From NCBI RefSeq assembly GCF_001194135.2, contig NC_068987.1, positions 73,249,208 to 73,295,258 of the forward strand: a stretch of DNA of 46,051 nt, read 5' to 3'. Positions 9,312-10,846 of this stretch are shown one piece after another. The notes below the pieces were generated by a model that saw nothing but the letters and a program-made list of their open reading frames with translations, did not search any database and had not been told where the DNA came from. The number at the start of each line of letters is the position of its first letter. Positions within the stretch are counted from its first letter, which is position 1. The position numbers and the translations under genes were made by a program. The DNA comes from Octopus bimaculoides (Eukaryota).

Positions 9312-10846
9312 AGGAAGTAGCTCATTCCCCTCCTCAGAACTTTCCAGGAAGTAATTACTCCCCCACCTCTGAACTTTCCAGAAAGTAATAAACCCCCATT
9401 CCTTGGAACTTTCCAGGAAGTAATTACCCCCTCCTCGGAACTATCCATGAAGTAATTACTCCTCCCTCTGCAGAACTTTCCAGGAAGTAATTCCTCCCCT
9501 CTCCCTCTCCTTGGAACTTTCGAGGAAGTATTTCATCACCTCCTCGGAACTTTCCAGGAAGTAGATCATCCACCTCTTCCCTTTCCTTGGAACCTTCCAG
9601 GAAGTAATTACCCCCTCGTCTGAACTTTCCAGGAAGTAGTTATTCCCCCTCCTCGGAACTTTCCAGGAAATAATTCGCCCCTTTCTCCTCGGAACTTTCC
9701 AGGAAGTTATTCCCCTCCACCTCTCCTTGGAACTTTCCAGAAAGTAATTACACCCCTCCCCGGAACTATCCAGGAAGTAATTACTCCTCCCTCTTTGGAA
9801 CTTTTCAGGAAGTAATTCATCCCCTCCTCCCCTTCATTGGAACTTTCCGGGAAGTAATTACTCCCCCTCCTCGGAACTATCCAGGAAGTAATTACTCCTC
9901 CCTCTTCGGAACTTTCCAGGAAGTAATTTCTCCTCCCTCTTCGGAACTTTCCAGGAAGTAATTTCTCCCCTCTCCTTGGAACTTTCGAGGATGTATTTTA
10001 TCGCCTCCTCGGAACTTTCCAGGAAGTAGCTCATCCTCGCCTTCCTTGGAACTTTCCAGGAAGTAATTACTCACACACCTCTGAACTCTCCAGGAAGTAA
10101 TTACTCCCTTTCCTCGGAACTTCCCAGGAATTAATTCGCCCCTTCTACTCGGAACTTTCCAGGAAGTTATTCCTCCCCTTCCTTGGAACTTTCCAGGAAT
10201 AATTAACCCCCTCCTCGGAACTTTCCAAGAAGTAATTCGCCCCACCATCGGAACTTTACAGGAAGTAATTCCCCCCTTCCTTGGAACTTCCCAGGAAGTA
10301 ATTACCCCTACTCGGAACTTTCCAGGAAGCAATTACTCTTCCTCCTCGGATCTTTCCAGGAAGAATTCTTCCCCCTTGGAAGTATCCAGGAAGTATTTCA
10401 TGCTTCTCCTCGGAACTTCCAGGAAGTAATCCATCCCCTTCTCGGAACTTTTCAGGAAGTAATAACTTCCCCTCCTCTGAACTTTCCAGAAAGTAATTCA
10501 CCCTCCTTGGAACTTTCCAGGAAGTATTTCATCCCCTCCTCGGAACTTTCCAGGAAGTAATTATTCGCCACCTTCCCTGCCTTAGAACTTTCCAGGATGT
10601 AATTACTCCCCCTCGGATCTTTCCAGGAAGTAATTCCTTCCCCCTCCTCTCCTTCATTGGAACTTTCCAGGAAGTAATTACTCCCCTTCCTCGGAACTTT
10701 CCAGGAAATATTTCCTCCCACTCCTCGGAACTTTGCAGGATGTAATTCACCCCTCCTCGGAACTTTCCAGGAAGTTATTCCACCTACCCTTCCTTGGAAC
10801 TTTCCCGGAAGTATTTCATCCCCCATCCTCAGAACTTTCCAGGAAT
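9312..10846. repeat. Minisatellite of about 44 units of 30-43 bp: conserved core GGAACTTTCCAGGAAGTAATT plus a variable C/T-rich linker
   Basis: Units were counted by eye. The core is well conserved while the linker varies in length and sequence. Diagnostic variants recur 13 units apart (units 6-11 versus 19-24). Confidence 0.95.

Follow-up and report, generated by a model that had tools for sequence, protein, structure and literature searches.

A GGAA/TTCC-rich minisatellite within a hexosaminidase D intron of Octopus bimaculoides is probably lineage-specific and neutral

Introduction

Ordinary intronic minisatellites and VNTRs are head-to-tail arrays with a unit length of 10-100 bp; they extend over the kilobase scale, include variant repeats and are lineage-specific; they grow by slippage and block duplication, and their length changes fall in the low-complexity parts of the unit. 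Human satellite III is a megabase pericentromeric (GGAAT)n satellite that serves as the target of HSF1 in nuclear stress bodies. The HRAS1 minisatellite, whose unit of about 28-34 bp resembles a kB site, is reported to be bound by rel/NF-kB proteins (Trepicchio and Krontiris 1992, cited in PMC3464111), and GGAA microsatellites act as enhancers when bound by EWS-FLI1 (PMC6075149). A further functional case is IFNB1-MRE, a tandem repeat in an intron of FOCAD, which contains 45 PU.1/SPI (ETS-family) motifs, is repressed by MORC3 and drives IFNB1; TWIST2-MRE belongs to the same class. The motif clusters of IFNB1-MRE are conserved at the locus across mammals, and both binding and enhancer activity have been proven, although just 2 of the 53 motif-cluster repeats in that study regulated nearby genes (PMC13373173).

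The tandem array analyzed here lies within a window of 46,051 nucleotides of Octopus bimaculoides DNA, the whole stretch to which all coordinates below refer. It shares each of the above features of ordinary minisatellites, differing from them in a unit that is unusually rich in GGAA/TTCC half-sites. Like satellite III it repeats nGAAn-type pentamers, but it measures 1.5 kb, is intragenic and has only two correctly phased pentamers per unit. Its unit is close in length to that of HRAS1, for which binding was demonstrated in the work cited above, whereas a strict kB site is found in 0 of the 44 octopus units. It has in common with the EWS-FLI1 elements a set of repeated GGAA cores readable by ETS-domain proteins; those elements, however, have 4-bp units and are activated by an oncogenic fusion protein, while the octopus array is a 34-bp minisatellite. 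The MORC3-repressed enhancers are likewise intronic, with tens of ETS-family GGAA motifs (45 in human, compared with 35 copies of GGAAGT in octopus). In contrast to the mammalian clusters, with their conserved position and proven binding, the octopus array is absent from sister species, and its unit offers one ETS-like site per 34 bp, overlapping a STAT palindrome. The ordinary intronic minisatellite is thus the nearest kind, and the MORC3-repressed tandem-repeat enhancer the nearest functional analogue.

Results

Structure of the array

The minisatellite comprises 44 head-to-tail units on the plus strand, with a modal length of 34 bp and a partial unit at its opening (about 9319). The principal features are as follows.

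9319-10846, plus strand (host gene on the minus strand): minisatellite of 44 units of about 34 bp, found by Tandem Repeats Finder and by fuzzy core search
9370-9796, plus strand: units 2-13, the earlier copy of a block of about 13 units that occurs twice, recognized by lag-13 identity and common unit-specific variants
9839-10249, plus strand: second copy of the same block (units 15-26), recognized in the same way

Tandem Repeats Finder reported the interval 9327-10845 with a period of 34, 43.7 copies, 73% matches and 11% indels. A fuzzy search detected 44 cores between 9336 and 10831, every one in the plus orientation, in agreement with the approximately 44 units that an earlier note had described from inspection of the letters. 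The consensus core of the unit is GGAACTTTCCAGGAAGTAATT, and the remainder is a C/T linker of 10-23 nt (59% C, 30% T). With up to three mismatches to the consensus, 40 cores were recovered, where none would be expected by chance, and the rest of the 46-kb window contained none; only six cores are exact. The spacing from core to core ranges from 30 to 44 bp (mode 34, mean 34.8, sd 3.2). In its unit length, within the range of about 10-100 bp, and its head-to-tail arrangement the array is a typical minisatellite, as represented in one assembly of the species.

When 43 units were aligned, each core position kept the consensus base in 32-43 of them. The linker had been described in the earlier note as varying freely between 10 and 22 nt, a description that suits only part of it. 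The three bases following AATT are hypervariable, the consensus being retained in 21-29 of 43 units, and the inner C/T run is the site of length changes; TCCT, the last four bases of the linker, is retained in 36-42 of the 44 units, little below the core. Immediately before the core, 29 units have C and 15 have T, giving a CpG/TpG junction. Repeated decay of CpG at this junction (CG in 22, TG in 14, CA in 3) was considered and remains a possibility only, as the junction types are inherited between duplicated blocks and hence represent few independent events. Over the whole window CpG is strongly depleted, with an observed/expected ratio of 0.36 outside the array and 0.46 inside.

A block of about 13 units (about 460 bp) is present twice, as units 2-13 and 15-26. 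At a lag of 13, seven-unit blocks reach 85.7% identity against a median of 76%, and variants specific to individual units are common to both copies. A higher-order periodicity of the array as a whole was rejected, the weak overall lag-13 signal being that of a single block duplication.

In searches beyond the species, a two-core pattern had no match in metagenome contigs, and a 20-mer of the unit gave 0 viral, 2 metagenome and 4 bacterial-genome matches, each a single chance match without an array. In a literature search, no paper was found that contained either the core string or the string of the neighboring SINE.

Host gene

The array is located in intron 12 of the gene for hexosaminidase D (HEXD), which is encoded on the minus strand. 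Mapping of the annotated O. bimaculoides HEXD protein gave 14 exons on that strand, from 42872 to 4478, and a protein search with the spliced exons identified O. vulgaris hexosaminidase D at 94% identity. The 90% cluster of the latter protein includes those of O. bimaculoides, O. sinensis and Argonauta hians, and the HEXD homologues possess a GH20 catalytic domain. The exons that bound the array were defined by exon mapping.

14111-14212, minus strand: HEXD coding exon 12 (ending ...FPKCKFPGSDIYLQMLDFLRFELDYNEYIHSDR)
8787-14110, minus strand: HEXD intron 12, GT-AG, 5.3 kb, holding the array
8700-8786, minus strand: HEXD coding exon 13 (RQTWMNDYNLQRGFLNPAHLQQLLDEALR)

The reading frame continues uninterrupted from the exon at 14212-14111 to that at 8786-8700, and the intronic position proposed in the earlier note is thereby borne out, the array being enclosed in the GT-AG intron 14110-8787. 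Read in the direction of transcription, the array stops about 540 nt short of the 3' splice site.

Flanks and neighboring repeats

The immediate surroundings of the array include unique and repeated sequence.

9040-9221, plus strand: dispersed SINE-like repeat ending in (ATG)n, separate from the array, matching several other sites of the window
9222-9311, no strand: proximal unique flank, with orthologous sequence in O. vulgaris and O. sinensis as far as about 9304-9308
10847-10940, plus strand: distal G-rich flank with a G-quadruplex-type motif (GGGGAGAGGGGGTGGGTGGG, 10869-10888), lacking a homologue at the O. vulgaris and O. sinensis locus
10941-11563, no strand: assembly gap of 623 N in the sequence, which hides the distal junction

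The edges of the array are sharp, and the search of either flank for degenerate units, which would indicate growth in place, gave nothing significant. A search for inverted repeats or transposon features bordering the array gave only microsatellite palindromes and palindromes within the array itself; no transposon ORF was seen adjoining it, the distal end falling in the gap. Because this gap begins 95 bp past the array, the copy number and the distal junction are insecure.

The window contains octopus-type SINE repeats and assembly gaps. An ORF at 7626-8060 (plus strand) resembles what we take to be the C-terminal tail of a LINE-type reverse-transcriptase protein, and it has no Pfam match; the stretch is about 93% identical in O. 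vulgaris and O. sinensis, and the insertion is therefore older than the species split. Farther from the array, 5155-5439 (minus strand) preserves part of a DDE_3 (Tc1/mariner-type) transposase, with a score that falls short of the Pfam cut-off, and at 39393-39472 about 13 units of (TTAGGG)n, an interstitial repeat of telomere type, abut an assembly gap. A SAP-domain ORF at 42388-42600 (plus strand), which may belong to a neighboring gene, adjoins HEXD exon 1 (42872-42723, minus strand) on the opposite strand, and a short degenerate AACCCTAA stretch is present at 45064-45107.

The orthologous locus in related species

Intron 12 exists in all three relatives whose HEXD genes were compared.

O. 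vulgaris HEXD locus: 55.7 kb, no Ns, intron 12 of 4.2 kb, without cores
O. sinensis HEXD locus: 59.5 kb, no Ns, intron 12 of 7.6 kb, without cores
Argonauta hians HEXD locus: 27.6 kb, intron 12 of 0.9 kb, without cores

Neither a core with up to three mismatches nor any comparable tandem repeat was detected in the orthologous HEXD gene of the three species, and the motif cluster is thus not kept at the orthologous locus. At the end nearer the exon, the O. bimaculoides sequence can be aligned with that of O. vulgaris and of O. sinensis (89-95% identity) as far as about 9304-9308; in both species alike, the homology stops some 10 bp or less from the edge of the array. The distal flank (10847-10940) has no counterpart in either locus, and both species have SINE insertions at the corresponding place. 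With Argonauta as the outgroup, parsimony favors a single gain on the O. bimaculoides lineage over an older gain that was later reversed; loss in an ancestor shared by O. vulgaris and O. sinensis is the less parsimonious, though possible, account.

The possibility that O. vulgaris retains a single proto-unit at the empty site was rejected, only the 9-mer CTCAGAACT being common to the two sequences, which is not significant. Intron 12 extends from 40617 to 44780 in the O. vulgaris locus and from 42834 to 50432 in that of O. sinensis (4.2 versus 7.6 kb, locus coordinates). The two lengths differ while the stretch just upstream of the array site is 97.8% identical between these species, which indicates very recent insertions or deletions in this intron. 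Another intron of the O. vulgaris gene (locus positions 8362-8653) contains an unrelated tandem repeat, also of 34-bp period, with 8.8 copies of the consensus AGATCGATAAAATGACTTAGCGGTTCGCCAAACA.

Transcription factor-like strings

The core had been proposed to stack heat-shock, kB-like, STAT and ETS motifs at about 40 sites. All counts given here are string matches per 44 units and do not imply binding. GGAAGT, the ETS core, is intact in 35 of 44 units, and CAGGAAGT, in which the GGAA core is accompanied by favorable ETS flanks, in 26. The perfect STAT GAS palindrome TTCNNNGAA is intact in 29 of 44 units, in 26 of these as TTCCNGGAA. The STAT and ETS assignments thus hold as strings, and intact copies number 26-35 per 44 units instead of about 40. 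The heat-shock assignment stands in part: the two-pentamer element GAANNTTC is intact in 30 of 44 units, while the three-pentamer string GAANNTTCNNGAA occurs in only 3. A heat-shock element comprises at least three contiguous inverted nGAAn pentamers; the consensus has two in phase, with the third shifted by 1 nt. The kB-like assignment fails with the strict consensus GGGRNWYYCC, absent from all 44 units, and the relaxed form GGRRNNYYCC yields 23 matches.

The motif strings are 40- to 200-fold denser in the array than in the remaining window. Taking a homotypic motif cluster to be ten or more motifs of one factor inside a tandem repeat, the array is one at the string level only (GGAAGT, 35; TTCNNNGAA, 29). 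The four motif classes are not independent, since all reuse the three alternating GGAA/TTCC half-sites of a single amplified seed. Among composition-matched 34-mers, all four classes occur together in fewer than 1 in 200,000 and three of them in about 1.4 in 10,000, and 0.3% of those with the STAT palindrome carry the other three, figures which refer to one seed, copied 44 times and chosen post hoc.

A second palindrome, around AATT, is also present in each unit (AGTAATTACT in 8 units), and TAATTA, a homeodomain-type core, occurs 15 times in the array, about 16-fold more densely than in the remaining window. This palindrome, which had been overlooked, illustrates how readily such a unit yields additional "sites".

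Substitution rates within the unit

The core differs from the consensus at 5.75% of positions (46/800). Between the duplicated blocks, 7.2% of core positions differ, compared with 15.7% substitutions in the linker, and of the alignment columns with gaps 29 belong to the linker and 1 to the core. The earlier note's statement that the core is better kept than the linker is upheld by this paralogous comparison (odds ratio 0.42, p = 0.011), in which substitution is about 2.2-fold lower in the core. The polypyrimidine linker changes faster because its C/T runs slip, nearly all indels being located there.

For calibration, the mostly intronic DNA around the array differs pairwise by 6.9% from O. vulgaris and by 7.0% from O. 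sinensis, or about 3.5% per lineage, on the assumptions that lineage rates are equal and that the consensus approximates the ancestral unit, with homogenization by exchange also possible. By this yardstick the core evolves at a roughly neutral rate, at or above the neutral expectation, and the linker at about twice that rate. A core no more conserved than expected, which the earlier note had set down as one half of the outcome that would tell against its reading, is therefore what was found. A hypermutable polypyrimidine tract prone to slippage accounts for the contrast between core and linker better than a protected core does; the core may conceivably be under weak constraint as well, which is compatible with the difference of about 2.2-fold.

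Per-position substitution revealed no binding-site footprint within the core. Motif-critical positions of the core were substituted at 5.0% and non-critical positions at 7.1%. Fisher's test of critical versus other positions reached p = 0.02 only with linker-edge positions pooled, and 0.13 after one subfamily marker position was removed. Elsewhere in the unit, variation amounts to 11-12% at the alignable linker ends, 42% at the three bases after AATT and 26% at the junction CpG pair. Helical phasing is not kept, because the spacing ranges over 30-44 bp.

Coding and RNA potential

Long ORFs cross the array on the minus strand because the minus-strand consensus unit, by inspection, lacks a stop in any frame. 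Coding potential was rejected for these ORFs, which have neither a Pfam match nor a homologue among 5.8 billion proteins, and whose period is not a multiple of three. No structured RNA, tRNA or known RNA family was found; a folding z-score of -4.75 is attributed to pairing of the palindromic units.

Discussion

The array is probably a selectively neutral or nearly neutral minisatellite, specific to the O. bimaculoides lineage and situated in intron 12 of HEXD, whose motif strings were inherited from one GGAA/TTCC-rich seed. A seed of about 34 bp, rich in alternating GGAA/TTCC half-sites, would have been multiplied, either in place by replication slippage and unequal exchange or through the insertion of an array preformed elsewhere. 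Its growth included the duplication of the 13-unit block of about 460 bp, and in its decay the core has changed at about the neutral intron rate and the polypyrimidine linker faster, with variation at the junction CpG. The stack of STAT-, ETS- and HSE-like strings was copied 44 times from one seed and therefore does not represent 44 independently selected sites. A regulatory role is unnecessary to explain anything observed.

The array may alternatively have arrived inside a larger inserted segment, borne by a transposon or as an ectopic copy of an older array, and would then be a member of a dispersed family. This origin is itself compatible with neutrality, and we regard it as possible, if rather doubtful. 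Insertion of an already diverged array is a live alternative because the distal G-rich flank is likewise lineage-specific and the divergence of the units (5.75% from the consensus; about 77% pairwise) exceeds the approximately 3.5% available to each lineage since the split from O. vulgaris. It would also suit the sharp edges, with flanks free of degenerate units, and an intron 12 into which repeats have inserted with particular frequency in each of the three Octopus species. Against it, searches of the 46-kb window and of 142 kb of related loci turned up no further copy, and terminal inverted repeats and a transposon ORF were not found beside the array, whose distal end falls in the gap. The 9-mer that the first unit shares with O. 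vulgaris lies at a nearly equal offset from the common flank, which hints at a local origin without being significant (179 of 1000 shuffles reach the score). A more drastic account, by which the array or its placement is an artefact of short-read assembly (a collapsed, expanded or chimeric join), could appeal to the nearby 623-N gap and to the distal flank without an orthologue; the chromosome-level assembly GCA_001194135.2 (CM046607.1) matches positions 9201-10940 (1,740 bp) exactly, with the same contig and Ns, and so provides no independent check. Such an artefact is nonetheless very unlikely, as collapse would not give distinct, ordered variants in 44 units together with a coherent 13-unit duplication, and on its proximal side the array passes without a break into orthologous intron sequence.

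Functional readings face the same data. A stress- or immune-responsive enhancer array or transcription-factor sink, as put forward in the earlier note, receives no support from the sequence tests: the array is absent from three relatives, the core is about neutral, and the difference between critical (5.0%) and spacer (7.1%) positions is not significant. In its broader form, a species-specific homotypic cluster of ETS and/or STAT sites, perhaps with HSF, acting as a putative inducible enhancer, repressed enhancer or sink for HEXD or a neighboring gene, this reading would in our estimate be unlikely. It draws on the 26-35 intact ETS or STAT strings in 1.5 kb, at 40- to 200-fold the density of the remaining window, on a seed improbable by composition, and on a core substituted 2.2-fold less than the linker. 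There is also a precedent, in that IFNB1 is driven by a tandem repeat that lies in an intron and carries 45 PU.1/SPI motifs, and the unit sequence of such clusters differs between species (PMC13373173); absence from sister species is compatible with a species-specific function. That precedent, however, is conserved at its locus, in contrast to an array missing from the orthologous intron of three relatives, and very few repeats of its kind regulated nearby genes (2 of 53; PMC13373173); the approximately neutral core without an internal footprint and the unphased spacing of 30-44 bp argue in the same direction. We consider it highly improbable that the array is one copy of a mobile dispersed family which places overlapping STAT/ETS clusters into genes, creating lineage-specific stress or immune enhancers. 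Action at the RNA level, whereby 44 purine-rich G-run elements and self-complementary segments in the HEXD pre-mRNA, some 540 nt before the 3' splice site, influence how exon 13 is spliced, is extremely improbable. The transcribed strand does read (AAUUACUUCCUGGAAAGUUCCGAGGAGGGG)n, the fold of a 301-nt stretch scores z = -4.75 against shuffled sequence, and splicing-linked intronic minisatellites have been reported (PMC4039745). Mutually pairing palindromic repeats would give such a fold score in any case, however, exon 13 and its splice sites are unchanged in species without the array, and no Rfam family was matched.

Should binding or inducible activity prove true, the array would be a very young cephalopod tandem-repeat enhancer, parallel to the mammalian motif-cluster enhancers; and a mobile STAT/ETS-cluster family, if true, would give invertebrates an equivalent of the interferon enhancers seeded by transposons and of mammalian tandem-repeat enhancers. 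As things stand, the array is one more lineage-specific intronic minisatellite, of little importance in itself. Its value is that of a worked control, an apparently designed stack of transcription-factor sites that is yet absent in sister species and, to judge from its substitutions, evolves neutrally.
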